Assembly: GCA_002269645.1 (NCBI GenBank)
Contig: NIVC01004018.1
Coordinates: 1 to 64,000 of the forward strand
Direction: 5' to 3'
Length of the DNA: 64,000 nucleotides
Source of the DNA: Macrostomum lignano
Lineage: Eukaryota
In this document: piece after piece, positions 3,398-58,711 of the stretch
Layout: the number at the start of each line of letters is the position of its first letter
How positions within the stretch are numbered: the stretch's first letter is position 1
Position numbers and translations under genes: made by a program
The notes under the pieces: model-generated
What the model saw: the letters and a program-made list of their open reading frames with translations, nothing else
Databases searched by the model: none
Told to the model about the DNA's origin: nothing

Positions 3398-5968
3398 TTA
3401 ATTGAAGCAGGCACGGCGATTGACATCCTTTGACAGAAACTTCTCCACAGTTGCAGATATTGTACTTGCAGTATTACAAATCATGTCCTTGTGGATGAAG
3501 GCCAATGCCAGTCCATTCAGCCGCTCTTCTCCCATGGTGCTGCGCAAGTAATTCTTTAGGAACTTCAGCGAAGAGAAGGATCTTTCTCCAGTGGCAGTGG
3601 AGACAGGCAGCGTTGCGTAAATGTTCAAGAGAGTGCTGATGTTGGGAAACAGGCTATGGTCGCACTCCAAGATTGTCTTAGTCAAAGTTGTGGGCCATTT
3701 CTGTGGATCCTCCCTTTGCCAGAGTCGCATCCACTGGTTAAATTCTGCTTCAACCTCCTCTTGCTCCTGGCTTGGCAGAACTGAAGCAAAGTGCTGCATT
3801 GATGGCTTGAGCTGAATGAATGGATTTGCATGCTTCTTGGCTGTTGCTGGGATAAGGGCACTGAGTCCAGAAGCAACGTCAGAAAGGCGTGCAAATCGGT
3901 CTTGCAGGTTGACCAGTAGTCCATCCAAGAAGGGAACAAAGATTGTCAAACGCCAGTAGTCCTTGGGATCAGTAGTAGGAAGATTGGCACGATTCGTTTG
4001 ACGCGCAACTCGCCTAGGAGGAGTCAAGTCGATTTCAATTGCCTCTGCAGTCTCTAGAATCTTCTCCCAGAGCTCACTGAACTTCTCTGCAGACTCTTCC
4101 CGCCACTTCTGCAGTTGCTCTTGCACATCCGCAATTAGAAACCTGGCGCTTAGCAAATCTATTGCACACTTCTGGAGAGCTTCTGCCAATCCCTTGGTGA
4201 GAGTCAAAGTTACATCCAGAACCACGATTGATACCAGAAACTCTGCGTCCATCGAATTAAGCAGAGCTTTTGCATTTCTGGATGCTTCTGGGTTGGAATG
4301 CTCGCGAACTTCTTCAAGAGCTTGCACGATTGGTATCAGTAGATGTCTTGTTGTTAGAACCGCATCGTGTCTTTCAATCCAGCGAGTGTCGCATAGGTTC
4401 TTCACTCGACGGGTATTGGCCTGATGGTTCTGTGACTTCACTATGTCCTCCAGACACTTCACTCTCTGAGCAGAACTGTTGAAGAACTTCGCCAGCTCTT
4501 GGATGTTTCCCCACGTATTTCTGATGCCAGGGACTTCGCTGCTCTTGCTGATGACCAGATTGAGTTGATGCGCAGCACAATGAATGTAGATGGCGATGGG
4601 GTGCTCTTCTCTGATTATTGCTTGAGCTCCCTTGAACTTGCCGCTCATCGCACTGGCACCATCAAATCCCAATCCCACCAGCCGCCCTTCCAAGGGAATG
4701 CCGAGAGTGACGAACTGGGACAGAATGTTCCTCGCAAGTCCCGCTCCAGTCATGTCCTCTGCAATGGTGAATCCCAGAAAGTCTTCACAAATTGCTCCAT
4801 CAAACACATAGCGAACACATACTGTCAGCTGCTCCTTTGTGGCCTGGTCTGTTGTTTCATCAGCCAGGATGGACACAAACTGTGCATTGTTTATCCGCTC
4901 CTTCAGGCGGTCCAGAATCACTTCTCCAATGCACTCGATCAGCTCATTCTGAATCGTCTTGCTGGTGTACTTAGCGTTGCCGGGTCCAGAGCGCAGATGC
5001 TCCTCTAGCCTCTTGTCTCCTGTGTCCACCATTGCTCGCAGGATCTCTCGAAAGAGACCATCATTCTGGCCAGGTCGGTCGGCAGTCTCTAGCACACCAT
5101 GATCGTCTCGGTGTCCCCTGAGAGCAGAGCCACTCCTTCCACAGACTAGGATGGCACGCACAATGGAGCTGAGGATATGCCTGTTCTTTGCAATCTGCTC
5201 CTGCCTCTGTGTTGCCAATCGACTGTCAATGTGCTGTTCTGGCACCATTCGCTTGAACTCCTGTGCTCTCAGTACATTGTCTTTGTGGTAGTTGGTATGC
5301 TCGTGAGCGCAGAGATAGCCATCTGCTCCCAAGAGTCTTGCGTACTTTTGCAACGGCTCATGAACTAGTCTTCCCAATTGGTGACCTTGTTGCCCTTGCT
5401 GAGTACCAAATAGCACACAAACTTTGCAGAACAAGCCACTCTTTACATGTGAGTATGCTAACCAGGGTTTGTCGGCTAGATGACTGTGCCTCAGGAATCT
5501 CTTTTCTATTTTGCCCTTTGTCTTTCGCTCTTCAAATGGCATTGGGTAGGAACTGGGGGGCTCCCACGTTTGCGTCAGGAAGGCTATCTTAGTGGCACTG
5601 TCAGCAGCAGGATCGAATAGACCTATGTCAAAGTCAGACAACTTGCTCACTTGTACTTCATTGGCTTCTCTGGTATCTCCATTGAACTCGGCATCGCATT
5701 CAGAGGTGCCGGCTTCAGCTTCGTCTGAATTACGAGTACAAGTTGTAGCAAATTGTTCCGAAACAGCAACAGCAGAAGAACTAGGTCTCTCAGCAGTGGC
5801 AGCAGCAGCAGGAGCAGCAGAAGAAGAAATGAATCGGATCTCAGCAGCAGTAGAAGCAGCAGATAACTTTGCAGCAGCAGTGGCAGGACCAGGTGGTGTA
5901 ACAAAAAAGTGCGTTAGCAATTTTTGTCGCTTTGCGTCACGCTCTAATGGAGAAGATGCTCGCTTCAT
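3398..5968 (-). CDS. hAT transposase (ZMYM1/PRKRIR-like, DUF4371 plus hAT dimerisation region), 856 aa from first ATG
   Basis: Uninterrupted ORF with ILADETTD, GFDGASAM, CAAHQLNL (CxxH), DTRW and ATGERSFS motifs. The ORF track starts at a GTG (6211); the first in-frame ATG is at 5968. Confidence 0.92.
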   Translation of the reverse strand: MKRASSPLERDAKRQKLLTHFFVTPPGPATAAAKLSAASTAAEIRFISSSAAPAAAATAERPSSSAVAVSEQFATTCTRNSDEAEAGTSECDAEFNGDTREANEVQVSKLSDFDIGLFDPAADSATKIAFLTQTWEPPSSYPMPFEERKTKGKIEKRFLRHSHLADKPWLAYSHVKSGLFCKVCVLFGTQQGQQGHQLGRLVHEPLQKYARLLGADGYLCAHEHTNYHKDNVLRAQEFKRMVPEQHIDSRLATQRQEQIAKNRHILSSIVRAILVCGRSGSALRGHRDDHGVLETADRPGQNDGLFREILRAMVDTGDKRLEEHLRSGPGNAKYTSKTIQNELIECIGEVILDRLKERINNAQFVSILADETTDQATKEQLTVCVRYVFDGAICEDFLGFTIAEDMTGAGLARNILSQFVTLGIPLEGRLVGLGFDGASAMSGKFKGAQAIIREEHPIAIYIHCAAHQLNLVISKSSEVPGIRNTWGNIQELAKFFNSSAQRVKCLEDIVKSQNHQANTRRVKNLCDTRWIERHDAVLTTRHLLIPIVQALEEVREHSNPEASRNAKALLNSMDAEFLVSIVVLDVTLTLTKGLAEALQKCAIDLLSARFLIADVQEQLQKWREESAEKFSELWEKILETAEAIEIDLTPPRRVARQTNRANLPTTDPKDYWRLTIFVPFLDGLLVNLQDRFARLSDVASGLSALIPATAKKHANPFIQLKPSMQHFASVLPSQEQEEVEAEFNQWMRLWQREDPQKWPTTLTKTILECDHSLFPNISTLLNIYATLPVSTATGERSFSSLKFLKNYLRSTMGEERLNGLALAFIHKDMICNTASTISATVEKFLSKDVNRRACFN

Positions 5969-6248
5969 TCTTCGTGATTGTGCATCATATGTTAAGACTT
6001 GCCAAATGGATTTTACGGACTTCAAGTTCAATTGGTGTTGAGTGTAGACAGATAGCCGGGACTGGCTCAAACTATTTGTCCTTTGTAGCAGGCTGTTAAG
6101 CTTTCGCTGGTTTTCGCAAGACGCATTGACGCAATGTACATTGCTCTCAAGTCTGAACCCCAAAATGGGGGAGGAAAAGCCTTTCAACCCCTTTTCATTC
6201 CATTCCCCCACCCCAAGTCTCTCTCAGAGTCTCAGTGTCTCTCTCACC

Positions 6249-7157: not shown

Positions 7158-8269
7158 GAGTTAGTCTCACCACAGGTTAGGCCTATTATAATGCAATAAT
7201 TGATGGCTTTAGATTTTCCAACCGGCTAGTTAGGCCTTGACTTTATCCAATGAATGTAGAGTCTTGTAATTGTATAGGCCTACAGAAAATAAAATTCTGG
7301 AGTCTAGTCACATTACATGATTTGCATCTTCATCACTGTCACTGGTGCACAATTCTACGAGTAACGAGTACCTTTAAGTCCTTTAACCAACAGGGCAATG
7401 GCTATAACTCTATAAATAGGGCCTATAAATAAGTATAACTATAAGTAAGTAACTATATCTATAATTATTACCTTGACACTATTCTCGTCAATGATTAAAA
7501 CTATAGATGTATAGTCATATAGGCCTAACCTGGCCTATGACTATGTTGCGGTCCGTGTTTTTACCGAGACGGGCCGAGACGGACCGAGACGGAGCCGAGA
7601 CGGACCGAGACGGAGCCGAGACGGACCGAGACGGAGCCGAGACGGACCGAGACGGACTACAGGGAGTGTGTTTTTACCGAGACGGAGCCGAGACGGGACC
7701 GAGACGGACTACGAGTCCGCGTAATTAACGAGACGGGCCAAGTGGTGCGTTAGAGCACTCCACAATGAGGTACACAATGGGTGCGTCCGAGCACTCTATA
7801 AAAATATTTAGTTAGGTTTCATTTGATTTATTGTGTTTATTTAATAGCGCAGAAATTGTAATAATAGTAAAATAGAAATTGTATTGCAAATAAACATTAC
7901 TTACAGTACGAGCGTACATGTATCTACGCTCGTATATAAAACGCTAAATATACCACTTTCGATTTTTGTTTTACTGCTGGAGCTACAATGAACCGTTGTA
8001 GCCATTGCAGCTCATTGTCGAGTGCTCAAACGCATCCAAGGCGAATGCTTTCGAATCCCCCACGGAGAAAGTTCATGAAATCATACACATGCATGTACAT
8101 GTAACAAGATCTTCTAATTGTTTTGCATTTTATACACATTTCGATTTTTTCAGTGATGGTTTCGGCCTATTTAAGCCTGTAGCTTCGAGCCTCAGAGCCC
8201 AGAAATGAATCTCTGTAGAGTATCATATTAAATGCTACTGTAAGACTACCGTAAACAGCGTATAGCAAA

Positions 8270-10215: not shown

Positions 10216-10420
10216 AGTGTCCCTTATCATCGGCTATGACTACGAGATTGACAGCAAAAAGACACTGATGTCAGGTAAGTGCAAAGCCCCCTCTAGTCAG
10301 AAGCCCGATTTCGAAAAGCTCCGGTTTGGTGAGCCGGTGGCGGCGGGTTAGCTAATCTCTACCTTCAAAATTCTCCCTGCTTGTCTCTCGCTGTCCCTCT
10401 CTTAGCTATAGGACCTAGAC

Positions 10421-11219
10421 CATAGATTTTATATTCCCTAGATAGGCCACCAGTGGCGTAGGGAGGGGGGATAGGGGGGATGTATCCCCCCGAAGAGCCT
10501 GACCAAAACTTTTTTTGCCCTTTGTTGCTATACATGCTACCATGTGAGCACTTTTACTTTGGTGTATCCCCCGTAGAAAATTCAACTTGGTGTATTCCCC
10601 CCGTAGGAAATTCCTGGCTAGCCGGCTACGCCCCTATAGGCCACTCTCTATCAAAACAATGTTAAAATTTGGTACCGAAAAAAGCAAGTATGATCCGGAC
10701 ATTGACTTGAGAACTGTCAGAGAGCTCACCATCATAACTAGTACTGCTTGTCCTCATCAGCTGCCAAAGGAACAAGTACGAGTGGTTCGGAAGTTGATAG
10801 TTCTACCAATGAGGCAGCCTGCATTGTTACGGAGACATTGATAGAAGAAACCTGATACAGGTGACGTTTCGTTTCTGCCTGCTTGCCTTCTACACTGCCT
10901 GCTTGCCTGTTTGAATCCGATTCTTTAATGCTGCTTTCTGTTTCGTGCCTGTCTTTTGTTTCTGCCTGCTTGCCTTCTACACGCGTTGTTAATTTGTTAA
11001 TTTGTTTGTCTGAACAGTTTTACAATCCAGGGGACTGCGATGGGACACAAAACGTGCAAAATATATTCAAATTTTCTCAATCAGGCAATAATGGCACAAA
11101 AAATGCATCCACGTATCGCCCAAGCTACTGAACTTAAACTATAAGTAGACGAAATACACTGGGTCTATGGGCGCGCCCAAGTACACAGAGTGGTCCATCT
11201 AGGGAATATAAGATCTATG
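10421..11219. mobile_element. P-element-like MITE (799 bp including a nested hAT MITE)
   Basis: About 33-bp TIRs CATAGATYTTATATTCCCTAGATRGRCCACTCT; 8-bp TSD ACCTAGAC (10413-10420, 11220-11227); empty site GGACCTAGACTGC at about 61307. Confidence 0.9.
10451..10636. mobile_element. hAT MITE (186 bp) inserted in the left TIR of the P-like MITE
   Basis: TIRs CAGTGGCGTAG / CTACGCCCCTA; 8-bp TSD TAGGCCAC (10443-10450, 10637-10644). Confidence 0.87.
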
Positions 11220-11374
11220 ACCTAGACTGCTCGCTCACAGATCAAGCTACATGTACCTTGGGGCTGGCTGGGGGCTGTTGCCCCCAGGACCCCGGGTCCT
11301 GCACACAATGTCGTGGTGAGCTATCTGTGCAGTATGAGACTGGTATGGCCTTTATCCCAGTCAGCGATGCTCAC

Positions 11375-11515
11375 ACCTGCCTCCCCTGGCGGGCTGATAG
11401 CTCAAGAGACTCTGTCTCCTGAATTTCACCTTGCAAGGCGCACTTCGAAGGGTACTCGTCCCGTGGGTGTTAAGGCAGGCCTTCTTGGGCCTTGCCGAGC
11501 TAATTCGTTGGCGCC
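11375..11515 (+). ncRNA. HDV-like self-cleaving ribozyme candidate at the LINE 5' end
   Basis: Manual fold gives every HDV element in the correct order: P1 ACCUGC/GUGGGU; P2 GGCGC..CGAA/UUCG..GCGCC; P3 GGG/CCC; L3 UACUCGU; P1.1 AC/GU; P4 GGCAGGCC/GGCCUUGCC; J4/2 GCUAA. Confidence 0.72.
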
Positions 11516-11747
11516 GGGTCCTGGTGTGACCATATAAACGCACCCTCTAATGTCCCAGTGTAACTCCGTGCTGATTGACGCTTGGCCAGGGAGTAGTCTG
11601 GTCGCTAACGGTTCCCCTTGCGCTTTTGGGTCCCCCCGCAGGGTGGTATTTTGCTTTTTGGGGGCCTGCCGCTTGGTTTGGGGTTGGTTTGGGCCTTGCG
11701 GCTCTTTGCCTGTGTTCTGCAGGAAGTCCCATTTTTACTTCCAGCCA

Positions 11748-12650
11748 ATGGCTTCTAACCAAAGTACTCAACCGGCTGTGGATGACACAGTGCCTCCAGC
11801 CTCGGCTGGGGCCGTGGACTCCGCGGCCATACCACCTGCTACCATCGGGGACGCCTCGGCGAGACCCGTGGAGCCAACTCTGAGCGGTGCCTCCGAGAAG
11901 ACACCTGCTACTCCAGCTGCCAAGCAGCTGAGCACCACCTCTGGAGCTGCCCGCCGTCGACTTAACAAGGCGAGGCGGGCCAAGGAGGGCGGAAGCCTAA
12001 CCTGCGCCAGGGGCCAACGGCCCGCGGCAGCGGAAGCTTCCCAATCTGGGGCGGTGGCGGAAGAGGGCCTCGAGCTGCGCATCCGCTCCTACGAGGCCAA
12101 CCCTCCCTGGGGCAGTGAGCAGGGCGGGCGGGATGCGGGGGCGGCCGAGGCCGAGGCGCGAGCTTCTGCCCAGACTGCCAAAGCAAACCGCCCCGCCCGG
12201 CAGCACGGCCGCGCGGGCAAAGCTAAGCGCGCCGTTGAGGGCGGAGGCGACCGACGCCCAGCGCGCAGCACCTAGCGGCGCGGCCTGTACCAGCGTGCAG
12301 CTGAGGCAGTCCGTACCGCCAAAATCACTCAGCTGAGGCGAGAGGTCGCCGGGACGCCTAGGCGCACCGGTTCGTCTAGGGAGGGTGGGGACGCCCCAGC
12401 TGGGCCCAGCCACTCGAGTCAGGGCCGACTGGAGACGGACCCGCCTGCCCAGGCGGCTGGCTGCTCCAGGGCATTGGGCCAATCTGAGGCGGAGGACCCC
12501 ATGGCTGGTGGGCGAAGGGCGGCGAACGCTGCCTATTGTCTTCCGTCCAATCGGGGGCCTTCTGCTGAAGAAGAGCCCATGGACCTGAAGCCGGTGAGCC
12601 CCGAGGAGGAGGAGGAACTCCTGGCGGCTGCAACATCCGATCTGCACTGA
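11748..12650 (+). pseudogene. LINE ORF1 (300 codons, one premature TAG at 12273)
   Basis: Frame from ATG 11748 (MASNQSTQ) stays open to TGA 12648-12650 except for TAG 12273-12275; Ala/Arg-rich with an acidic C-terminus; its stop overlaps the ORF2 ATG (TGATG). Confidence 0.65.
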
Positions 12651-14847
12651 TGCCAGCGGCAACCTGGTGTCCGCAGATCAACACCCAGCACTGTGTGGCG
12701 GCGTCAGTCAACTTGATGCGCACAACAGAGCAACAGCTTCCGGGCCTGGTCTTCGTGCAGGATCCCTGGATGACTAAAGGTAAGCCAAATAATGTGCCAT
12801 CTGGCTATATATCACTGTTTTTGCATGGCGGACTCTCAGCCTCGGCCAAGATCTCTGGTCTTTGCTGCAAAAGCTTTTGAGGCATGGATGAGACCTGATC
12901 TCTCGACTGGGGACATCTGTGTTGTTCAAATCAATAACCTCATTCCAATAAACCCGTGCTGGTCGCATATGCCTATTTCCCAGGCGATGTCCCAGTAGTC
13001 TGCGACGCGCTAGTCAACCTCATTGACTACGCCGCGTCCCGTCGGTTCGAGCTGCTCATTGCAGGGGATGTGAACGCACACCACCTGCATTGGGGCAGCA
13101 GGAACACCAATAACAGAGGCAAAGAACTGCTGGCCTATGTCAGCAGCACTAACCTCAATTTCTGTATCGTGGGCAATGCACCAACGTTCAATAATGGGCG
13201 GTGGGCCGAAGTCATCGACACCACCATCGCATCACCCGGACTGCTTTCCGCAGTTACGGGCTAGCGAGTGTGGGGCGAGGACTCGCTCTCGGACCACCGC
13301 TTTATCCGCTTTTGCATTGGGCCGACCAAGCAAAAGCCTAAGGTCACTTGGAGTCGGAACGTCAGGAATCCCGATTGGGCCGCCTTTGGCTCGAAGCTGA
13401 GCCGCGGCCTTCGGGATCTTGACCCCCCCCCCAGTGACCTCTCTGATTGCCAGGTGGTGGATGATCTCGCCTCCTCCCTGGGCAGGGCGATCACCACTGC
13501 CTTTGAAGCAGCCTGCTCTATAAAAGCCTATAAAGGCAAGAAATCTGCTCCCTGGTGGAACCCAGAGCTCGGTGCCCTTCGGCGCCGAGCCAGGACCCCC
13601 AAAGACGAGCGCTCAAAACCAAAGACCCATCTGACAGAGAGGCCTATACCCGTGCGATCCACGAGTTTAAGGGCCAAGTCAGAAGGGCCAAGACGGCTAA
13701 GTGGCGCCAGTATTGCGAAGGGCTTGAGGGCTCTCGCCCCGTAGCCCGCGTGGTTAAGGCACTCACAAATGACCGTTTTTTCTAAACTCTGTTGTGAAGA
13801 GACCTGACAGCTCGGTCACAGAGAGCTCTGAAGAGACTCTAAAGCTAATGCTCAACAGTTTCTTCCCTAAATCTCCGACTCAGCAGGGCCCGCCTGACCA
13901 CACAGTGGTTCGAGGGCAAGGCCTAGCAAAGTCTATGATCACCAAAGACCGCATTATTAGAGCGACAAGGTCCTTTAACCCATTCAAGGCGCCTGGGCCC
14001 GACGGCATCTACCCAGCGTTCTTGCACGAAGCAGTGAAAAACCACCGCTTTCTGGACTTCTTCTGTCGTCTCCTTCGAGCTTGTGTGGAGCTGGGCTATA
14101 TGTACCAGTTGCGTGGAGAGAGGCCCAGGTGGTATTTATCCCCAAGCCTGGAAAGAGCGATTACCAATCGGTGAAGGCCTTCAGGCCTATCAGCCTCACT
14201 TCTTTCTGCCTCAAGCTCCTCGAGACACTGGTGCTCTGGCGCCTACTTTCGGTCGAGCTGAAGCGCTTCCTACTCTCGCAGAACCAGCACGCTTTCCGCG
14301 CGGGCAGGTCTACCGAGAGTGCCCTCCATGTCATTGTTGACTTCCTGGAGAGGGCCGTTCTTGGCAGCGGCTTTGCCCTCTCGCTTTTCCTTGACATTGA
14401 GGGGGCCTTCGACAACATCATCTTCGAGGCCTTTTGCAGAGCCCTGGAATCCAGGGCCACGAACCCTCACCTTGTCCGGTGGATCATGTTCATGATCCGG
14501 AACCGCACTGTTGTGGCCCACCTAAACGGCAGCTCTCTTTCGGCGCCTGTCCGAAAAGGGGGCCCCAGGGCGGAGTTCTCACCCCCGTTCTCTGGAACAT
14601 GGTCATGGATGAGTTGCTTTGCAGTGATCTCCACGACCCCATTCTCAAGGTGGGCTATGCCGATGATGTGACCGCGATTTGCACGGGCCCCTCGGTTGAC
14701 ACCATCAGAGATCTTCTGCAGGGCTTTCTAGGATGAGCGGAGCGTTGGGCAAACCAATGTGGCCTTAGACTCTCAGAGTCGAAAACCACAGCGGTCATGT
14801 TTACCAACAAACTGCTCTGGACCATGAAGCCCCTCACTGGACTATGA
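12650..14847 (+). pseudogene. LINE ORF2: APE endonuclease plus reverse transcriptase, with multiple frameshifts and stops
   Basis: QINTQH, VQDPW, AGDVNAHH..WGS, NNRG, PTF, IDTT, SDH; then KAPGPDG, FRPISLTS, FLDIEGAFDN, PQGGVLTP.LW, GYADD. Confidence 0.93.
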
Positions 14848-15377
14848 AGCATAGACAGACAGTTTCAATCAGCTCTCTGTGAATGATTTTCTTATTTTAA
14901 TAGCAAAAATTAAGTTAAAAATGCATTTTTTCTCCCCGGGGTCCCCGGTTCAATTCCCCGAGGAGTATTCCCCGACAAGCTCCCCGGGGTCGACATCCCT
15001 AGTCTCGGTAAACATATAATTACATTTACACTCGGTAATAGACCGAGTCGCGGCCCGTCTCGTTAATTACGCGGACTCGTAGTCCGTCTCGGTCCGTCTC
15101 GGCTCCGTCTCGGCTCCGTCTCGGTCCGTCTCGGTCCGTCTCGGTAAAAACACGGACCCACTATGTTGGTATAAGACCAAGATGGCCACAACATTGAATC
15201 TCAATTATATTTACTCTCTCTACCATTTACCAACAACTTAATAGTTATTGTTATATTAATTATGATGTTTAATCAATATAATTCATAAATACTAATAGTC
15301 TAATACTATAAAAGATTTGAAACTAATTACCCATAATACAAAAACTTTTTTTAGTGTTTGTGTCAATTTATAGTTGA

Positions 15378-24959: not shown

Positions 24960-25076
24960 GGCTTTTTTGTGACCGCTTGGATGTAGTGGGAATTGTGCGT
25001 CCTGAACTGAACTGTGTCCACTGAATGTAAGTTTTTGAGTCCACTTGTGTGTCTACTAAATATTTTGTGTCCTCCC

Positions 25077-26270
25077 GTGTGTCCATTGAGCAAGTCTTTA
25101 TTGTGTCCATTCATGTGTCCATTAAATAATTATCAATGTGTCTACGTCTGTGTCCATTGAATAATTGTCCATGTGTCCACATCTGTGTCCATTGAATAAT
25201 TGTCCATGTGTCCACACCTGTGTCCATTGAATAATTGTCCATGTGTCCCACACCTGTGTCCATTGAATAATTGTCCATGTGTCCACACCTGTGTCCATTG
25301 AATAATTGTCCATGTGTCCCACACCTGTGTCCATTGAATAATTGTCCATGTGTCCATTGAATAATTGTCCATGTGTCCACACCTGTGTCCATTGAATAAT
25401 TGTCCATGTGTCCATTGAATAATTGTCCATGTGTCCACACCTGTGTCCATTGAATAATTGTCCATGTGTCCACACCTGTGTCCATTGAATAATTGTCCAC
25501 GTGTCCCGCACCTGTGTCCAGTGAATAATTGTCCATGTGTCCACACCTGTGTCCATTGAATAATTGTCCATGTGTCCACACCTGTGTCCATTGAATAATT
25601 GTCCATGTGTCCACACCTGTGTCCATTGAATAATTGTCCATGCGTCCATTGAATAATTGTCCATGTGTCCACACCTGTGTCCATTGGATAATTGTCCATG
25701 TGTCCATTGAATAATTGTCCATGTGTCGACACCTGTGTCCATTGAATAATTGTCCATGTGTCCATTGAATAATTGTCCATGCGTCCATTGAATAATTGTC
25801 CATGTGTCCATTGAATAATTGTCCATGCGTCCATTGAATAATTGTCCATGTGTCCACACCTGTGTCCATTGAATAATTTTCCATGTGTCCACACATGTGT
25901 CCATTGAATAATTGTCCATGTGTCCATTGAATAATTGTCCATGTGTCCACACCTGTGTCCATTGAATAATTGTCTATGTGTCCACACCTGTGTCCATTGA
26001 ATAGTTGTCCATGTGTCCCACACCTGTGTCCATTGAGTAATTGTCCATGTGTCCATTGAATAATTGTCCATGTGTCCACACCTGTGTCCATTGAATAATT
26101 GTCTATGTGTCCACACCTGTGTCCATTGAATAGTTGTCCATGTGTCCCACACCTGTGTCCATTGAGTAATTGTCCATGTGTCCACATCTGTGTCCATTGA
26201 ATAATTGTCCATGTGTCCACATCTGTGTCCATTGAATAATTGTCCACGTGTCCAGTCCTGGGTCCATTGA
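25077..26270. repeat. Composite minisatellite (23-bp TGTGTCCATTGAATAATTGTCCA plus optional 12-13-bp TGTGTCCACACC)
   Basis: Read directly. Confidence 0.97.
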
Positions 26271-27719: not shown

Positions 27720-29310
27720 AACAGTTGTTGGGCCGTCGCCACCCTCCCAGATCCTCAGTTGTTGGGCCGTCGCCACCCTCCCAGATCCTCAGTTGTTGGG
27801 CCGTCGCCACCCTCCCAGATCCTCAGTTGTTGGGCCGTCGCCACCCTCCCAGATCCTCAGTTGCTGGGCCGTCGCCACCCTCCCAGATCCTCAGTTGCTG
27901 GGCCGTCGCCACCCTCCCAGATCCTCAGTTGCTGGGCCGTCGCCACCCTCCCTGATCCTCAGTTGCTGGACCACCGCCAGCCTCCCAGATCCTCAGTTGC
28001 TGGACCACCCTCCGAGATCCTCAGTTGCTGGGCCGTCGCCACCCTCCCAGATCCTCAGTTGCTGGGCCACCGCCACCCTCCCAGATCCTCAGTTGCTGGG
28101 CCACCGCCACCCTCCGAGATCCTCAGTTGCTGGGCCGTCGCCACCCTCCCTGATCCTCAGTTGCTGTACCACCGCCAGCCTCCCAGATCCTCAGTTGCTG
28201 GGCCGTCGCCACCCTCCGAGATCCTCAGTTGCTGGGCCGTCGCCACCCTCCCTGATCCTCAGTTGCTGTACCACCGCCAGCCTCCCAGATCCTCAGTTGC
28301 TGGGCCGTCGCCACCCTCCCAGATCCTCAGTTGCTGTACCACCGCCAGCCTCCCAGATCCTCAGTTGCTGGGCCGTCGCCACCCTCCCAGATCCTCAGTT
28401 GCTGGGCCGTCGCCACCCTCCCAGATCCTCAGTTGCTGGGCCGTCGCCACCCTCCAGATCCTCAGTTGCTGGACCACCCTCCGAGATCCTCAGTTGCTGG
28501 ACCACCCTCCGAGATCCTCAGTTGCTGGACCACCCTCCGAGATCCTCATTTGCAGGACCACCCTTCGAGATCCTCAGTTGCTGGACCGTCGCCACCCTCT
28601 GAGATCCTCAGTGTCTGGGCCAGCCTCCCAGATCCTCGCAGTGTCTGGGCCAGCCTCCCAGATCCTCAGTTGGTGGGCCAGACCAGCTTCCCAGATCCTC
28701 AATTGCTATGCCAGCCTCAGATCCTCAGTGTCTGGGCCAGCCTCCCAGATCCCCAGTGTCTGGGCCAGCCTCCCAGATCCTCAGTGTCTGGGCCAGCCTC
28801 CCAGATCCTCAGTGTCTGGGCCAGCCTCCCAGATCCTCAGTGTCTGGGCCAGCCTCCCAGATCCTCAGTTGGTGGGCCAGACCAGCTTCCCAGATCCTCA
28901 ATTGCTATGCCAGCCTCAGATCCTCAGTGTCTGGGCCAGCCTCCCAGATCCTCAGTGTCTGGGCCAGCCTCCCAGATCCTCAGTGTCTGGGCCAGCCTCC
29001 CAGATCCTCAGTTGGTGGGCCAGACCAGCTTCCCAGATCCTCAATTGCTATGCCAGCCTCAGATCCTCAGTGTCTGGGCCAGCCTCCCAGATCCTCAGTG
29101 TCTGGGCCAGCCTCCCAGATCCTCAGTGTCTGGGCCAGCCTCCCAGATCCTCAGTTGGTGGGCCAGACCAGCTTCCCAGATCTTCAATTGCTGGGCTACC
29201 CTCCCAGATTCTCAGTTTCTAGGCACCGCAACCCTCCCGCATCCTCAGTTCCTGGGCCACTGCAACCCTCCCAGATCCTCAGTCGCTGGGTCACCGCCAC
29301 CTATCCAGTT
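27720..29310 (+). repeat. Large GC-rich minisatellite with several unit variants (core CCAGATCCTCAG)
   Basis: 34-bp units on the left, shorter GTGTCTGGGCCAGCCT variants on the right. Confidence 0.97.
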
Positions 29311-40242: not shown

Positions 40243-43200
40243 TTCTTATTTCAAAATCTGTAGTTGAAGGATGAAACAGAAAAATTGTGTGCAGTTTTTT
40301 AAAGCTGTATATTTATATAGTACTAATAGTAAAAGTATTTTGTATTACAAAAAATCCATAAGCATGTCAGTTTTTCATTTGTTTATATTTTATGATGCAA
40401 AAGTGCAGTCTATTAAAAGAAAGACAAAGTACATAGCTAAAAAGTATTATATGTACACAGTAATTATAATATAAGTAGTAACTCATGCTATAGAAACGGG
40501 TGTTTAGCTACTTATATTTTATGGTATAGCAGTTCTATTTCAGGAGCAGCTATCTGTAGGTTATGCTTGTATTTAGAATGTAACAAAAATTTAATAGATC
40601 CTATACTTAAATTACCAAAATAGATGAGATAAAAATGTTTGAATTTACATTGCATTTATAATTATCATATATACATGTGTATATCAAGAACCACTAGCAG
40701 TATATCAGGATGCCACACTCAAAAACTATATAAATTTTCAAAAGCCAATTTCCTTAGAAAAAAACTGCTGAGATTAAAAAAATTCTTTACAAAATCAATA
40801 CTTGCATTCAATCTTAAGGTTAGTGAAGATTATTAATATTGAAATTTAGTTAGCATAAAAACATATTACTCTGTTGCATTTTATACAATTGTGTAGTAAA
40901 AGTTTTTCTTTTATATAAGCCCAAAGTTTTAAATACTTGCAAGTGGAATTAGCTAATTTTTTGTTTTGTTCCTTCTTGAATAAAGCATAGGTCTATTTTA
41001 GTACAAATTTGCATATAGGTATTAATTCTCTTGAGCCAAATTGTTGAAGGTATAATTTTATTTCAATGTTAGTGAGATTGCAATGTACAATATTACATAA
41101 CAGAAGAATAATTAGAAGCAAATAATTCTAGTCTATTGAGGCCTAGTAAAATAGTCAGTAAAATAGTCAGTTGTTTTGTGACTATATTTTAGCCTTTAGC
41201 TAGCCTAGCCTGGCTGAAAAATTGATAGCTTTTTTATACAGACTACTAGTAGTTCAACAAAAAAAGAAAATGATATTAGTAAACATGGCCTACTATATTT
41301 AATTTCAAATAAGTCAATAAAATAGGATAAAATAGGGCCTTCAACTAATAATAAGCATTTAAATAAAATTATACCTGCAATAATGGCTTCAGAATCAAAG
41401 TGCCTGCCTGAAGCATTTTTATAACAAATATGCTTGATTTAAAAAAGAAACCAAACAAAAATTAGGTAGTGCTACTTGTGAGTTGTGAGTAATTACAACC
41501 TTGCCCTTGGGCTACTAATGATTTTATGAAAATGTTTTACTATATCTGCTCTCTGCAGTGTATTTACATTTTAACATTTAGAATTAAATCGATTACTGTT
41601 CATCGAATGCTGCACTACTAAAATTTTTAATAGGCTCTACTTAAAAGTAAAAAGTTTCTAATTTATGGCTACTTTATTAACTCGCTTGTACTATATAAAA
41701 GATTAAAACTCTAGTTAGCAATATTACTATTAAAACCAACCAAATTATACACAAAACTTATAGCACACAATCACTCATTAATATAGCGACAGATATAATA
41801 ATATACAATGATAGGAAAAAGCTGCCGTGCGTAATACAGAAAGTATAAGTTAAACATTTACATAATAAGTTATAATAAACATCGATCTATAATCGACATC
41901 GCATGGCGATATTTTAAAAAATTGCATGTATCTAGCAATGAGTTAAAACAAAAAATATTGCCTCTGTTTTACTGAATTTTTTATTTTATTTATGTAAGCT
42001 TAAAATCACTTTGAAAAAACAATACAAAATATTATATAAAATATTTTTGGCAAATGAGGAGATAAAATAATTTTTATCGAAATTTCGACGTCGAATGAAG
42101 GTTCAACCGACAACTCATTTGGCGCTAGTCTTAAATAGGCGAATATCGACGTCATTTCGACGTGATTTTTACCGCCGGGTTATTTCTAAGAAAGTTATCG
42201 ATTAGGACTACAGTTGGAGCGCATCATCAATATCCGCCTGTAATTCCTGATTATGCTATCTCTCTTATGCAGCCTTCACTTCGCATGCACTTACCCTATG
42301 CACACATCGTATGTTATATAATTTATCAAATCTTGGTCCCAAGCCGTCTACTCCCGATTGACATGGATTTGCAAATTAACTGGCAAAATTGATGAAACTG
42401 TCATGCAGAAACCGGCTGTCATATTAAAAGCTTTCGCAGCTCAGATAAATTGGCCAGTAGAGCTTTTTATGCATTGCATGGAGCTTCATATTTTAGACTC
42501 TCTTTTACTTCTCTTTCAAACGCTCAATATGGGACCTAAGCTCGTGCAAGTTGTCAATCCGTTCCTTACACCTCCAGGCCAGCTTCCATCGAACGGTTCG
42601 GTGTTGGCCAGGCTACATGAAGTGCACACTGTGTGAGTGTCCAAGGCAAGCCGCACGGATCCTCCAGAAATTCTATCAGAATTTAATCAATTGTGCCCTG
42701 GCTCTTATATGATCTGGGCTGCAACATGTGGATGTCCTAGATGAATTCTATGAATAAGAGGCCAGTACTGTTTTAGAGAAGTGACACTTTTCTGTGCATT
42801 TTTCTCTCACTAGGTCGTCGCCATTTGTGTACATCGATACACTAATGGAAATTGAAGTGTATGGCGTTTCTGAGTTGCACTTTTCTCTTGATGATACAGG
42901 AGGCCATAGGCTCTCTTGTTTGCTGCTAATGAAATAAACAAATCACTTCAATTAGCTATCATATGGCAGCGTTTTTATATTGATATCAACAATACAGCAT
43001 TCAACAAAACCAGCAAACTGTAAGGCACACTGCAATTAACAGGTGAAAACCAATGGATTTCTCGGTTAAAAATATGTACTTTTTGTTTTTTTATTTCTCA
43101 AGGACCACCAGAAGTTCTAGTGGTCCTTGTTATTTCTATTCCTAAAATTTGATGTCAAGGAAAAATCGGAATAGCTACGAATAGTCGGTAAACCAATGCA

Positions 43201-43974: not shown

Positions 43975-45192
43975 ATCCGAGCGAAAGGATTCACGCGACT
44001 GGATTCACGCGACTGGATTCACGCGACTGGATTCACGCGACTGGATTCACGCGACTGGATTCATGTGACTGGATTCACGCGACTGGATTCATGCGACTGG
44101 ATTCACGCGACTGGATTCATGCGACTGGATTCACGCGACTGGATTCACGCGACTGGATTCACGCGACTGGATTCACGCGAATGGATTCATGCGACTGGAT
44201 TCACGCGACTGGATTCACGTGACTGGATTCATGCGACTGGATTCACGCGACTGGATTCACGCGAATGGATTCACGCGACTGGATTCACGCGACTGGATTC
44301 ACGCGACTGGATTCATGTGACTGGATTCACGCGACTGGATTCATGCGACTGGATTCACGCGACTGGATTCATGCGACTGGATTCACGCGACTGGATTCAC
44401 GCGACTGGATTCACGCGACTGGATTCACGCGAATGGATTCATGCGACTGGATTCACGCGACTGGATTCACGTGACTGGATTCATGCGACTGGATTCACGC
44501 GACTGGATTCACGCGACTGGATTCACGCGACTGGATTCACGCGACTGGATTCACGCGACTGGATTCATGTGACTGGATTCACGCGACTGGATTCATGCGA
44601 CTGGATTCACGCGACTGGATTCATGCGACTGGATTCACGCGACTGGATTCACGCGAATGGATTCATGCGACTGGATTCACGCGACTGGATTCACGTGACT
44701 GGATTCATGCGACTGGATTCACGCGACTGGATTCACGCGAATGGATTCACGCGACTGGATTCACGCGACTGGATTCACGCGACTGGATTCACGCGACTAG
44801 ATTCATGCGAATGGATTCATGCGACTGGATTCACGCGAATGGATTCATGCGACTGGATTCACGCGAATGGATTCATGCGACTGGATTCACGCGACTGGAT
44901 TCATGTGAATGGATTCACGCGACTGGATTCACGCGACTGGATTCACGCGACTGGATTCACGCGACTGGATTCACGCGACTGGATTCATGGGACTGGATTC
45001 ACGCGACTGGATTCACGCGACTGGATTCATGCGACTGGATTCACGCGACTGGATTCACGCGACTGGATTCATGCGACTTGATTCACGCGACTGGATTCAC
45101 GCGACTGGATTCATGCGACTGGATTCACGCGACTGGATTCACGCGACTGGATTCATGCGACTTGATTCACGCGACTGGATTCACGTGAATGG
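43975..45192. repeat. 14-bp minisatellite GACTGGATTCACGC
   Basis: Read directly; more than 80 units. Confidence 0.98.
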
Positions 45193-45885
45193 ATGTATGC
45201 TTCTGATCTCAATCTCTGCTACTCTGCTCTCTGAAGAAGGAGTTGTTACCCTTTCCTGATCTGCTTCGTTGATTTTTTCGTTGATTTCCGGACCAGAGAT
45301 TTCAGTCTTTCATATCGAGATCGTCTCTGCATTCGCAATTTCTCTTGAATCTCTTGAATAATGGGACGCATTATTGAAGAAAACAATTTGGAAAATATTA
45401 AAGTTTTTATTTTCTTGCATGAATAAACAATTTTTTTGGCACTAAATTTATAATATCGGATCGTTTCGAATTCCAAATATCAAAATGAGACGAGTGTGTG
45501 TTTTTTATCGAATGTATACTTTATGTTCCGGGCATTGCGCCAGGGTGTCCACAGGCCTTCTGAGATCCTTTATTATCAATTAGACAAAATTATTAATCTC
45601 GAACAAAACACAAAAACTTCTCCTCGATTTGCAACTTGGACGTTCAGAAAATGGAATGCGGTTAGTCTAGCGCGAAAGCAGCTGCAAGCTTTCAATCTCG
45701 CCAATGCACTTTTCTACAGAACAGGCATGCCTCTGAAAGGATGCCATTGGCCTCGAAGCTGGTCCAATGCCGGCTCTGCAGCGCTCTGGCTAAAAAAGCC
45801 GTCAGCCGCCTCGCATTCCTGACAGAGCAGACAAATTCTTCACCAAAACCCGTCGAAGCTGAAGAACAAAAAGCATTCTGAAAGT

Positions 45886-46267: not shown

Positions 46268-47572
46268 ATGATTCACTCCGATCCCTGTGATTCACTCCGA
46301 TCCCCATGATTCACTCCGATCCCTGTGATTCACTCCGCTCCCTGTGATTCACTCCGCTCCCTATGATTCACTCCGCTCCCTATGATTCACTCCGCTCCCT
46401 ATGATTCACTCCGCTACCCATGATTCACTCCACTCCCTATGATTCAATCCAATCTCTACGATTCACTCCGATGCCTATGAATCACTCCGATCCCTATGAG
46501 GCTCTGCGCTCCCTACGATTCACTCCGCTCCTTATGATTCACTCCGTTTCTAATAATTCACTCCGTTTGCATGATTCACTCCACTTCCTATGATTCACTC
46601 CACTTCCTATGATTCACTCCACTCCCTATGATTCACCTCGCTCCCTATGATTCACTCCGCTCCCTATGATTCACCTCGCGCCCTATGATTCACTCCGCTC
46701 CCTATGATTCACTCCGCTCCCTATGATTCACTCCGCTCCCTATGATTCACTCCGCTCCCTATGATTCACTCCGCTCCCTATGATTCACTCCGCTCCCTAT
46801 GATTCACTCCGCTCCCTATGATTCACTCCGCTCCCTATGATTCACTCCGCTCCCTATGATTCACTCCGCTCCCTATGATTCACTCCGCTCCCTATGATTC
46901 ACTCCACTCCCTATGATTCAATCCAATCTCTACGATTCACTCCGATGCCTATGAATCACTCCGATCCCTATGAGGCTCTGCGCTCCCTACGATTCACTCC
47001 GCTCCTTATGATTCACTCCGTTTCTAATAATTCACTCCGTTTGCATGATTCACTCCACTTCCTATGATTCACTCCACTTCCTATGATTCACTCCACTCCC
47101 TATGATTCACCTCGCTCCCTATGATTCACTCCGCTCCCTATGATTCACCTCGCGCCCTATGATTCACTCCGCTCCCTATGATTCACTCCGCTCCCTATGA
47201 TTCACTCCGCTCCCTATGATTCACTCCGCTCCCTATGATTCACTCCGCTCCCTATGATTCACTCCGCTCCCTATGATTCACTCCGCTCCCTATGATTCAC
47301 TCCGCTCCCTATGATTCACTCCGCTCCCTATGATTCACTCCGCTCCCTATGATTCACTCCGCTCCCTATGATTCACTCCGCTCCCTATGATTCACTCCGC
47401 TCCCTATGATTCACTCCGCTCCCTATGATTCACTCCGCTCCCTATGATTCACTCCGCTCCCTATGATTCACTCCGCTCCCTATGATTCACTGCGCTCCCT
47501 ATGATTCACTCCGCTCCCTTTGATTCACTCCGCTCCCTATGATTCACTCCGATCCCTATGATTCACTCCGAT
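46268..47572. repeat. 19-bp minisatellite TATGATTCACTCCGCTCCC filling GPCR intron 1
   Basis: Read directly; contains a 474-bp higher-order duplication. Confidence 0.97.
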
Positions 47573-50944: not shown

Positions 50945-51537
50945 AAATCCTGCTTAAGCACAGGAGCGCACTAATCTGAAAGGCTGGTACATGTATGCAA
51001 ATCCAGATGCATGCAGTCAGACAGAAAGGAGATTCCCAGATCAAAATCGCCGCCCACAGAAGACTGCCGCAGGTATCAGCCAGCAATGTGGCCCAACCAG
51101 GTCGCGTGCCTGATAATTAGGAATGCAGCAAGAACAGGTATTTTCTTCTGAGTCTGAATTCCCAAAGCAGAAAGGTTCGTGATCAACATTAGCCAATCGC
51201 CTTTATTTCACCTTTGCTGTGGCTGCCAGTCCAGTGGGCGATTTTAGCAACTGAAAGGGGCTGCTTTCGCCAAAACAGAAATTATCGCAGAGACGCGATC
51301 GGCCGATAATTTCCCGTGGCAATTTTCGAAAATTCCGAGACTCACGCAATCGCGAAGCTTTTTGTTTCTGCACGCTGTGATCTGTCGTTTCCTGGCTATT
51401 ACAGTAATTTTAAAGCAAGCGCATGAAATTTTTCTTTTAAAAGATTCGTCAGGCTGCTTTGAGAACTGAAATGCAGAACTCGAAAAAATTCGATAAAATA
51501 CTTTTGATCTCGCAATAACGTAGCATGTTGCATGTTA

Positions 51538-52600
51538 CAGCAGCGGCAGACACCAGGAAACCCCTACCCAATTATCTCAGATACAGCAGCGGCAGACACC
51601 AGGAAACCCCTACCCAATTATCTCAGATACAGCAGCGGCAGACACCAGGAAACCCCCACCCTATTATCTCAGATACAGCAGCGGCAGACACCAGGAAACT
51701 CCCACCCTATTATCTCAGATACAGCAGCCGCAGACACCAGGAAACCCCCACCCAATTATCTCAGATACAGCAGCGGCAGACACCAGGAAACCCCCACCCT
51801 ATTGTCTCAGATACAGCAGCGGCAGACACCAGGAAACCCCCACCCTATTATCTCAGATGCAGCAGCGGCAGACACCAGGAAACCCCTACCCAATTATCTC
51901 AGATACAGCAGCGGCAGACACCAGGAAACCCCCACCCTATTATCTCAGATACAGCAGCCGCAGACACCAGGAAACCCCCACCCTATTATCTCAGATACAG
52001 CAGCGGCAGACACCAGGAAACCCCTACCCAATTATCTCAGATACAGCAGCGGCAGACACCAGGAAACTCCCACCCTATTATCTCAGATACAGCAGCCGCA
52101 GACACCAGGAAACCCCCACCCTATTATCTCAGATACAGCAGCGGCAGACACCAGGAAACCCCTACCTAATTATCTCAGATACAGCAGCGGCAGACACCAG
52201 GAAACTCCCACCCTATTATCTCAGATACAGCAGCCGCAGACACCAGGAAACCCCACCTATTATCTCAGATACAGCAGCGGCAGACACCAGGAAACCCCTA
52301 CCTAATTATCTCAGATACAGCAGCGGCAGACACCAGGAAACTCCCACCCTATTATCTCAGATACAGCAGCGGCAGACACCAGGAAACTCCCACCCTATTA
52401 TCTCAGATACAGCAGCGGCAGACACCAGGAAACACCACCCAATTATCTCAGATACAGCCGCAGACACCAGGAAACTCCCACCCTATTATCTCAGATACAG
52501 CAGCGGCAGACACCAGGAAACTCCCACCCTATTATCTCAGATACAGCAGCGGCAGACACCAGGAAACCCCACCCAATTATCTCAGATATAGCAGCGGCGC
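51538..52600. repeat. 46-bp minisatellite CAGCAGCGGCAGACACCAGGAAACCCCCACCCTATTATCTCAGATA
   Basis: Read directly; about 23 units. Confidence 0.97.
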
Positions 52601-53539
52601 ACACCAGAGGACCATCACTAAAAAAAATTTCAATTGAAAAATCCGGCCTCATAGACAGACTCTAAGCTGCTGAGCAGTCTTTGCGCCAATATCAGTACCA
52701 ATAGTACCAATAATACCAATATCAATATCAGTCGTAGCCAGTGGATTAGTGAATTAACGGTTGAGTAGTAGGGAGCTCGCCCGCAGATCACGTGAGACGC
52801 CCTATAGGGAACACAAGTCAGCATCTCATCAGCATTCAGTCAGAGCCCTGTCGCTATTCGCACGCAATTTGAGGTCGACGAATGAAAGAAATAATGGGGA
52901 TCAAATGCAGTTTATTAGTTCACAGAAACAGATGAGACTGGCCCCGGTAGATTATCTCGACTCCGCAATTAGCTTGACCTCAAAGATGAACTTCTATTTC
53001 CTCCGAAATAAAAAACTATTCGAGGCAGTCCACCAAAAAACCAACAGGGACGAACTAGTATTAAATAATGTGCAAAAATGAGAAGGCTGCCGGTGGAATG
53101 AGAAATGGAATTGATAGTCTCAACCGAGGGAAGACTGGAATCGAGCCGGCGCATATTTGCTTTGGCAATGCGTGCGCCACCCTTCCCATGGGGAATTGTC
53201 TGAGCAAATCTTATTGAACCGTGACTGAGTTGTTTACTTGAAGTTGGAGTTGGAGACAGATGATGGTAGACGGTAGAGGGGTATAATCAGCTGAAAAAGA
53301 CTCGGAATACATTCAAAGATGATCGAAATTTCACTCCTTACTCTTATTAATTCATCTCACGCAAGCAATTTTGTCCTAAAGTGAATGTTTTACACTCATT
53401 TTCATTAATTTTTACTTACAGTAACAAGTTTAATAAACGACGTTAAATATTTTATAGTCTAATATGTTAATATTTCTACTACCAGTAGTTCATTGAAGAA
53501 AGAAATACAATTATTAGATTTTCTCATTCATTTATAGGG

Positions 53540-56172: not shown

Positions 56173-56536
56173 TTACTGAAGAGATTTGCTGCACTGGCTG
56201 TGTTCACGGGTAAAATACACGTCAAGAACCAGTTTTTATCAAAGTTACGCAACCGTGCAAGCTGGCTGACAAATATGTGCCCATCCCATAGCCCATATCC
56301 CATAGCAACTGCATGCTCAGAGCTGACAACTTTCAACAGAAACTCACGAAGTTATAAATGAAAGCAACCAAACTGTTTTGCAATTTTTTTACAGAGTCTG
56401 CATGGTACAGTACAAAAATTCAATTGCACCTGCAAGACTTGCATCTAGTATTGCGAAAAGGCAGAAGGATTAGTATTATTTGTTGTCATCCTTTTAGCTT
56501 GTGCCAACCTTAGCAGGTGTATATGCAGTTGTGAAC

Positions 56537-57838
56537 TCTGTAGCTGGCATTCCTCTGTAGCTGGCATCAACTCTGTAGCTGGCACCCCCTCTGTAGCTGG
56601 CATCCCCTCTGTAGCTGGCATTTCCTCTGTAGCTCGCATCCACTCTGTAGCTCGCATCCCCTCTGTAGCTGGCATGCACTCTGTAGCTGGCATCCCCTCA
56701 GTAGCTGGCATTTCCTCTGTAGCTCGCATCCACTCTGTAGCTGGCATGCACTCTGTAGGTGGCATCCCCTCAGTAGCTGGTACCCCCTCTGTAGCTGGCA
56801 TCCCCTCTTTAGCTAGCATGCACTCTGTAGCTGGTACCCCCTCTGTAGCTGGCATCCCCTCTTTAGCTAGCATGCACTCTGTAGCTGGTACCCCCTCTGT
56901 AGCTGGCATCCCCTCTTTAGCTGGCATCCCCTCTGTAGCTGGCATCCCCTCAGTAGCTGGCATCCTCTCTGTAGATGGCATCCCCTCTGTAGCTGGCATC
57001 CTCTCTGTAGCTGGCATCCCCTCTGTAGCTGGCATCCCCTCTGTAGCTGGCATGCACTCTGTAACTGGCATGCACTCTGTAGCTGGCATGCACTCTGTAG
57101 CTGGCATGCACTCTGTAGCTGGCATCCCCTCTGTAGCTGGCAACCCCTCTGTAGCTGGTATCCCTTCTGTAGCTGGCATCCCCTCTGTAGCTGGCATCCC
57201 CTCTGTAGCTGGCATCCCTCTGTAGCTGGCATCCCCTCTGTATCTGGCACCCCCTCTGTAGCTGGCATCCCATTTGTAGCTGGCATCCCCTCTGTAGTTG
57301 GCATCCCCTCTGTAGCTGGCATCCACTCTGTAGCTGGCATCCCCTCTGTAGCTGGCATCCCCTCTGTAGCTGGCATCCCCTCTGTAGCTGGCATCCCCTC
57401 TGTAGCTGGCATCCCCTCTGTAGCTGGCATGCACTCTGTAACTGGCATGCACTCTGTAGCTGGCATGCACTCTGTAGCTGGCATGCACTCTGTAGCTGGC
57501 ATCCCCTCTGTAGCTGGCAACCCCTCTGTAGCTGGTATCCCTTCTGTAGCTGGCATCCCCTCTGTAGCTGGCATCCCCTCTGTAGCTGGCATCCCTCTGT
57601 AGCTGGCATCCCCTCTGTATCTGGCACCCCCTCTGTAGCTGGCATCCCATTTGTAGCTGGCATCCCCTCTGTAGTTGGCATCCCCTCTGTAGCTGGCATC
57701 CCCTCTGTAGCTGGCATCCCCTCTGTAGCTGGCATCCCCTCTGTAGCTGGCATCCCCTCTGTAGCTGGCATCCCCTCTGTAGCTGGCATCCCCTCTGTAG
57801 CTGGCATCCCCTCTGTAGCTGGCATCCCCTCTGTAGCT
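56537..57838. repeat. 18-bp minisatellite CTGTAGCTGGCATCCCCT
   Basis: Read directly; includes a 377-bp higher-order duplication. Confidence 0.97.
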
Positions 57839-58711
57839 AGCAGCTCTTTTCCACTCATAAACGCTGTGACCATAATTACGCTCTTATCGGAACAATGGAA
57901 TAGCTAGTTATAAAGTTTTGCCAATCTGGGGGGTATTTATTTACATTGTAAATAAATAAACAAGTGAACTTACTAGCTGTGAACTTTAAAACACGTAGCA
58001 GGCGTATGTCATTTTAAATTGTTTTTTTTTGTACAAACGCAGGCGCAATGCGCCAATCTCGGTTATGCATTGAAAAGTTGAGAAGAATCAAAGTGAGCAG
58101 CCTTCTATACTCAATCGCCAGTCATCCCCTCCAAGTCTGCGGCTCATATAGCCAGTTTTGCTTTCTTAAAGAGCAAAAAATCAGCTTTTTAAAATTCTCG
58201 GAACGCCCCGTACGCTCTTCCCCGCCCATCTCTCTGGGGGATTTCAAGTTCGAGAGGTGTTTTCAAGTCTAAGTAAAAGTGCAAAGTGGACTCGTGACTG
58301 GACGGTGCAGAGAAGGCACATTGGTATTGAGATGAATGTAAGACTATAGATGCTGATCGAATGCGGTGCTAATTGAATCAAATAAGATGCTGCTGCACGC
58401 AACCATTCACCTCAACGAATGCGAGATGTTCCATTAGCTGTATGATTATGCATGTATCTTCCTCAATTCAGCATCTGCTCAATATTAATATTGCTGGCTA
58501 TAGCGTCAATGTTCAATTAGCACTAGCTTTGCGCTTTATAGATCGAGCGATGGCTTTCTAAAAATGAACTCCGATCGAAATGGGATCAGGCAGAGCAGCG
58601 AGGGCGACTGCCAGCACTAATCGGCCGGTTGAAAAGTTTTTGAGCACAAGTGGTTGGGGAGGGGTCGACAAAAGTCTGAACTAAGAGAGAAGCTAGAAAT
58701 GGAATAGGACA

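Follow-up and report, generated by a model that had tools for sequence, protein, structure and literature searches.

The segment 11369/11375-11515 on the forward strand is probably an HDV-like self-cleaving ribozyme, or a recent relic of one, which lies in the 5′ leader of a LINE and would serve the processing of its 5′ end. It was found in a 64,000-nucleotide stretch of Macrostomum lignano DNA, which was analysed as a whole and is called the window below. The core of the candidate is statistically exceptional. All helices can be formed, and the core nucleotides, the strand and the position are the right ones. Judged by these features, the candidate very probably is one more case of something already known, namely the trimming of LINE transcripts by an HDV-type RNA.

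Sequence and fold of the candidate core

The candidate core comprises 147 bases (11369-11515), and direct reading found every listed sequence feature of the HDV type in it. Its parts are given below in window coordinates. The 5′ strand of P1 can be placed in two registers, which are referred to as A and B.

11369-11374, + strand: P1 5′ strand in register B, GCUCAC (descriptor match; duplex −5.8 kcal/mol)
11375-11380, + strand: P1 5′ strand in register A, ACCUGC (descriptor match; duplex −5.2 kcal/mol)
11381-11436, + strand: J1/2, a long insertion, 56 nt in register A (read; folding)
11437-11449, + strand: P2 5′ strand, consisting of GGCGC 11437-41 (extension), an ACUU internal loop and CGAA 11446-49 (read; MFE fold)
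11450-11462, + strand: P3, GGG 11450-52 with CCC 11460-62, enclosing L3 UACUCGU 11453-59 (read; descriptor; MFE fold)
11463-11468, + strand: P1 3′ strand, GUGGGU (read; descriptor match)
11469-11470, + strand: P1.1 3′ strand, GU (read; descriptor match)
11471-11498, + strand: UAA linker, P4 hairpin, then GA (folding)
11499-11503, + strand: J4/2, GCUAA (read; compared with drz-Agam-2-1)
11504-11515, + strand: P2 3′ strand, consisting of UUCG 11504-07, a UUG loop and GCGCC 11511-15 (read; MFE fold)

All strands are complementary and follow each other in the order P1-J1/2-P2-P3-L3-P3′-P1′-P1.1′-P4-J4/2-P2′. P2 has two parts, the outer GGCGC/GCGCC and the inner CGAA/UUCG. Among the seven bases of L3 are a U in first, a C in third and a G in sixth place. 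Of these, U11453 and G11458 are at the positions of the HDV reverse-wobble U and G, and the L3 G is important in HDV-like ribozymes (PMC3774820; PMC13635239). P1.1, with A11454 and C11455 as its 5′ strand, is made of the pairs C11455-G11469 and A11454-U11470, both Watson-Crick. P4 is formed by GGCAGGCC (11474-81) and GGCC(U)UGCC (11488-96), a hairpin of 8 bp that has a single bulged U (−14.1 kcal/mol). In J4/2, the place of the catalytic cytosine is taken by C11500; a U and two adenines come next and then, directly, the UUCG of P2. J1/2 contains a hairpin of its own (GAGAC 11406-10 with GUCUC 11414-18), and its isolated fold energy is −15.6 kcal/mol, or −19.5 kcal/mol when it is started at 11375.

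When 11369-11515 was folded as a nested minimum-energy structure, P3, P4 and the outer and inner parts of P2 emerged with no guidance. The fold was read from one copy, the one at 11369-11515. A ribozyme at this site had been proposed in an earlier note on this DNA, and each of the pairings listed there was confirmed by direct reading. The claim that the fold is still intact also appears to hold at the level of sequence, as the HDV-like topology and the core nucleotides are all present.

Searches were made with a strict descriptor. For the helices, it called for P1 of 6-7 bp, J1/2 of at most 80 nt, a P2 of 4 bp or more adjoining P3, and P3 of three Watson-Crick pairs. For the rest of the core, it called for an L3 of 7-8 nt with the pattern U-N-C-N-N-G, two Watson-Crick pairs in P1.1, a P4 hairpin, and J4/2 as C-N-R-A with the P2 3′ strand directly after it. 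A search with an HDV descriptor had been suggested in the earlier note; run over both strands of the window, it found the core at 11369-11515 and no other site. The number of strict matches expected in shuffled sequence was 0.011 cores per window (6715 block-wise dinucleotide shuffles with local composition kept), falling to 0.0022 per window when P2 had to be extended as observed (6715 shuffles). An earlier set of 150 shuffles had given 0.02 strict cores per window. As a positive control, the strict descriptor detects the experimentally active ribozyme drz-Agam-2-1, with the sequence given in PMC4908430 (Table S1). Real sequence served as a further control: a relaxed descriptor, which has no P4 requirement and permits longer J1/2 and P4, was run over 187 kb that precede related LINEs, where it produced one match, judged to be due to chance, inside ORF1 of the locus L017. 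A descriptor without the L3 constraint is uninformative, giving three matches in the window versus ~1.1 expected. Two of these loose matches, 41221-41432 (+) and 52578-52731 (−), were rejected, being rich in AT and at this chance level.

Rfam 15 contains no model that recognises the site. There was no HDV-type match in the whole window at gathering thresholds, nothing over the ribozyme site at E values up to 10 (11100-11800 searched), and no HDV-type match at E up to 10 in 11437-11530, which was cut at P2 with a 5′-truncated match allowed. Weak matches to MESTIT1, P26 and PhotoRC-I were judged to be due to chance. The lack of an Rfam match would be expected if the core were a chance look-alike, that is, a GC-rich leader that satisfies the HDV descriptor and was never catalytic. 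The same can be said of the lack of conservation in related LINEs (see below), of the fold z-score of the whole region, which is just −1.63, and of the little information contained in P1. However, the numbers of strict matches expected by chance are those given above, and a further factor of ~0.003 applies to a site at most 400 nt upstream of the ORF1 of a LINE on the same strand. Moreover, the active drz-Agam-2-1 has exactly this J4/2 pentamer and this UAA linker. A chance look-alike is in our view highly improbable, and an HDV-like ribozyme or its relic is the preferred reading.

P1 registers and the predicted cleavage site

P1 is the least informative helix of the core, with 6 bp, two wobbles and an ambiguous register. 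Its 3′ strand, GUGGGU, is made of G and U alone and can therefore pair promiscuously, including with GCUCAC at 11369-74. Within 130 nt upstream, there are two candidates for the 5′ strand, GCUCAC and ACCUGC. A third candidate, at 11233-38, was rejected, as it lies within a repeat (repeat R, described below) whose other copy is without the hexamer. In register A, the pairs are A-U, C-G, C-G, U.G, G.U and C-G, so that four are Watson-Crick and two, side by side, are wobbles; the first pair is A11375-U11468 and the cut would be at C11374/A11375. In register B, the pairs of 11369-74 with 11463-68 are G.U, C-G, U.G, C-G, A-U and C-G. The cut would then be at U11368/G11369; the base at −1 would be U, and the G at +1 would form a G.U wobble with U11468.

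The earlier note had placed the cut before A11375. Since registers B and A are equally good in energy (−5.8 vs −5.2 kcal/mol), this cut is not established; it is just one of two equal options, and register B gives the canonical G at +1. The first nucleotide, which had been regarded as atypical, hardly stands out. A non-G nucleotide at +1 is already documented in active HDV-like ribozymes, as L1TcRz cleaves before C (PMC3185411), and the A itself is ambiguous.

If the ribozyme is real, the chances that register B is the one used (P1 = GCUCAC, with a cut before G11369 and not A11375) seem to us evenly balanced. Apart from the equal energy, both registers satisfy the descriptor. Register B places G at +1, as in drz-Agam-2-1, although the base of P1 in that ribozyme is G-C and not G.U. 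It also places a G.U pair at the cleavage site as in HDV, for which a G.U wobble is named in the title of Chen et al. 2009, as cited in PMC13635239. In addition, register B leaves 11376-81 able to pair with 11388-93, which results in a well-folded J1/2 (−19.5 kcal/mol). On the other hand, the wobbles of register A could both be products of C-to-U decay of a perfect ACCCGC/GCGGGU helix, and under such an ancestral sequence, register B would contain an A.C mismatch. The observed/expected ratio of CpG, 0.72, bears on this possibility of decay. The tolerance of L1TcRz for a non-G first nucleotide also speaks against a need for register B.

In either register, P1 can grow into the GU strand of P1.1 by the two bases that precede the cut. 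In register A, the extended P1 is a helix of 8 bp (−9.5 kcal/mol) that would compete for the P1.1 strand. P1 extensions of such a kind reduce activity in the R2 and L1Tc ribozymes (PMC3185411).

The downstream LINE, its 5′ boundary and its relatives

A decayed non-LTR retrotransposon is present downstream of the candidate ribozyme on the same strand. The last base of the ribozyme, 11515, precedes the ORF1 ATG (11745) by ~230 nt on the sense strand, and the endonuclease and reverse transcriptase (RT) are further downstream. This supports the earlier note in placing the core ahead of a LINE with decayed ORFs. The two coding regions are the following.

11745-12650, + strand: ORF1-like frame, starts MASNQ... 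(low-complexity, one internal stop)
12677-14840, + strand: ORF2 remnant with an apurinic-type endonuclease and RT (Pfam, frames, tblastn with P0028)

ORF1 has no Pfam domain, and no relatives of it were found in the protein index at E 0.001 or better. ORF2 has Pfam matches to Exo_endo_phos_2 (E = 1.9e-15) and RVT_1 (E = 2.1e-12). Its sequence is distributed over three reading frames and carries four or more frameshifts along with several in-frame stops. Together with the internal stop in ORF1, these lesions agree with the earlier description of the ORFs as decayed. Because homology ends near 14840, the C-terminus of the RT and the RNase H are missing from this copy. A UniRef protein of Macrostomum lignano, P0028, matches the remnant in five segments at 81-100% identity and runs on into an RNase H domain. 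The gene model of P0028 is a chimera in which fragments of the endonuclease, RT and RNase H of the LINE family are fused with a part that resembles a neuropeptide precursor, with a start like that of a signal peptide and with RFGKRGYA repeats.

The domains of the LINE family are thus the endonuclease and RT, which are seen in the window, and the RNase H, which is seen only in the family member P0028 and in relatives. This set of three domains fits the LOA clade, and it is common also to the I, Ingi, Tad and Nimb clades. No clade assignment was obtained from the literature, from the uninformative names of the database matches or from Pfam DUF4780, a domain in the ORF1 of the relatives. This domain is carried by ORF1 of related LINEs in L017 (878-2317) and in P0080, which suggests that DUF4780 is an ORF1 module of the LINE group to which the present element belongs.

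Past the end of the LINE, there is a (GTCCGTCTCG)n array at 15082-15145 (region 14840-15200), which has an inverted counterpart at 7563-7657 (region 7446-7739). The abrupt end of the LINE near 14840 and the presence of this array indicate that the LINE was cut by a later insertion or rearrangement. Elsewhere in the window, 3398-6211 on the minus strand is an uninterrupted ORF of 937 residues that matches two domains of hAT transposases, DUF4371 and the C-terminal dimerisation region, and may represent an intact hAT transposon. Unusually many long tandem arrays are found in 20600-57900, including the following.

25066-26270: tandem array, period 23/35
27722-29295: tandem array, period 34
43987-45194: tandem array, period 14
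46268-47570: tandem array, period 19
51536-52607: tandem array, period 46
56536-57842: tandem array, period 18

On the 5′ side of the candidate, repeat R (~270 bp) is present in two copies, 10216-10420 plus 11213-11250 and 61073-61338, with 78-92% identity. The first copy is split by a MITE-like insert of 792 bp (10421-11212). The insert has terminal inverted repeats of ~60 bp (10415-74 and 11165-225, 74% identical) and is flanked by a short duplication, ACCTAGA. The homology of repeat R stops at 11250 / 61338, ~120 nt before the ribozyme, and the 118 nt beyond it (11251-11368) have no identifiable affiliation. Within them, a GC-rich hairpin, CUGGGGGC-UGUU-GCCCCCAG, was noticed at 11268-11287, with the palindrome GGACCCCGGGUCC directly after it.

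In baggins and L1Tc, the element starts at the cut site (PMC3774820). Here, the interval 11251-11368 left between the end of repeat R and the ribozyme would also fit a real ribozyme that is not the 5′ terminus of the LINE. Such a ribozyme could be internal to a leader that starts near 11251, or it could belong to a separate non-autonomous element abutting a 5′-truncated LINE. The absence of ribozymes from related LINEs points in the same direction, as does a perfect 9-bp complement that reaches from the upstream sequence (11317-25) into J1/2 (11396-404; UGAGCUAUC / GAUAGCUCA). The complement itself could have arisen by chance (~4%, roughly estimated), could compete in folding, or could mean that the element begins further upstream. 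Against a non-terminal position, there is no evident break between the ribozyme and ORF1, the N-terminus appears to be complete, the layout matches that of known LINE ribozymes, and the window holds no second ribozyme copy independent of a LINE. We consider a non-terminal ribozyme quite improbable and prefer the one at the 5′ end of the LINE.

Sister copies were sought in several ways. Self-BLAST of the 64-kb window found no second copy of the ribozyme or of the element, and an exact look-up of ten window ORFs gave no match; a look-up for the contig of P0028 gave none either. The DNA pattern of the core had no matches in bacterial and archaeal genomes and none in viral contigs. Overall, no second ribozyme copy was found in the metagenome, genome and viral collections or in the protein index. 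The best database relatives of the LINE have 30-52% protein identity. Related loci, 82 in number, consisted of L001 and L002 (~50% RT identity) and 80 metagenome contigs (29-38% identity). They were scanned with both descriptors, strict and relaxed, and with a covariance model of 11437-11515, and Rfam gathering thresholds were applied to 20 of them. Descriptors and covariance model found no HDV-like core upstream of ORF1 in any of the 82, and Rfam gave no match in the 20. The descriptor match in L017 is inside its ORF1 and is thus no leader ribozyme. In L001 (52% RT identity, 448-nt leader), there was no core, even when its leader was searched with filters off. Its leader was rejected as a homologue, as the similarity is scattered (CCCGUGG, GGCNGGCC, GAGCUA) and there is no HDV fold. 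The result in the 82 loci suggests that the ribozyme either is not conserved in the wider group or is too divergent there to be detected.

The absence from related LINEs bears on the question of whether ribozymes are inherited or repeatedly acquired. It may be that the gain was lineage-specific, that is, that a LINE family of Macrostomum, encoding endonuclease, RT and RNase H, acquired an HDV-like 5′ ribozyme which its relatives at the 82 loci lack; we hold this to be rather improbable. If it were true, LINEs would repeatedly capture or reinvent the fold and not inherit it, and the overlapping P1 registers might give two alternative cut sites.

Proposed function and comparison with known HDV-like ribozymes

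Catalysis, the P1 register in use and the identity of the cut with the element's 5′ end are what we infer from the sequence of the preferred 5′-terminal ribozyme. Read-through transcripts, or transcripts from the element's own promoter, would fold co-transcriptionally, with P1 stacked on P1.1 and P4, and P2 stacked on P3. C11500 in J4/2 would be the general acid, and Mg2+ would be located near the U11453/G11458 pair of L3. The RNA would then cut itself at the 5′ base of P1 (11368/69 or 11374/75), and the product would be an element RNA with a 5′-hydroxyl and with the ribozyme at its start. Since the cut element RNA would begin with the ribozyme, the latter would be copied into every full-length daughter. 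The LINE copy in the window is decayed and, therefore, its ribozyme may be dead.

If active, the candidate would extend the small set of retrotransposons known for 5′ self-trimming by an HDV-type ribozyme to a free-living flatworm and to a LINE that encodes endonuclease, RT and RNase H. It would also be a natural example of an all-Watson-Crick A-U/C-G P1.1 combined with a large structured J1/2. The accepted ribozyme mechanism would stay unchanged.

HDV-like ribozymes at the 5′ ends of LINEs are established for R2, R4/Dong, baggins and L1Tc (PMC3774820; PMC3185411). The ribozymes of R2, R4/Dong, baggins and L1Tc/ingi are on the sense strand and upstream of the first ORF, as is the candidate, and their presumed role is to cut the RNA of the element free of a longer transcript (PMC3774820; PMC3185411). 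There are also differences. In the known LINE ribozymes, the cut has been mapped and activity has been shown, whereas for the present candidate both are predictions from sequence. Its LINE is a flatworm element with endonuclease, RT and RNase H, and it has relatives without a detectable ribozyme.

In terms of fold, the candidate can be compared with drz-Agam-2-1 from Anopheles gambiae (PMC4908430), with which it shares the helix order. First, UAA follows P1.1 and GCUAA makes up J4/2 in both, and five of the seven positions of L3 match (UCCACGU in drz-Agam-2-1 vs UACUCGU here). Second, J1/2 is long in both and includes a hairpin of its own (44 nt in drz-Agam-2-1 vs 56-62 nt here), and P2 is lengthened beyond the core. 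Structured J1/2 domains are known to activate large HDV-like ribozymes (PMC4908430), and the length of J1/2 varies widely, up to 498 nt in R2 of the silkmoth (PMC3774820). In contrast, P1 of drz-Agam-2-1 has 7 bp, all Watson-Crick, and starts with G, whereas P1 of the candidate has 6 bp with two wobbles. P4 is ~95 nt in the former and 23 nt in the latter.

Finally, P1.1 is CC/GG in drz-Agam-2-1 and AC/GU here, and the earlier note had called it atypical on account of the A-U pair. The pair is real but not unusual, as A-U is already documented in active HDV-like ribozymes. In particular, there are fast HDV-like ribozymes with a U:A Watson-Crick pair in P1.1, unlike the G:C pairs of the viral ribozymes (PMC13635239). 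The second P1.1 position of these fast ribozymes is a non-canonical C:U or U:U, whereas both positions are Watson-Crick here, and their genomic context differs from the LINE leader of the candidate. The U:A pair in the P1.1 of such fast ribozymes suggests that the A-U pair of the candidate is compatible with activity.
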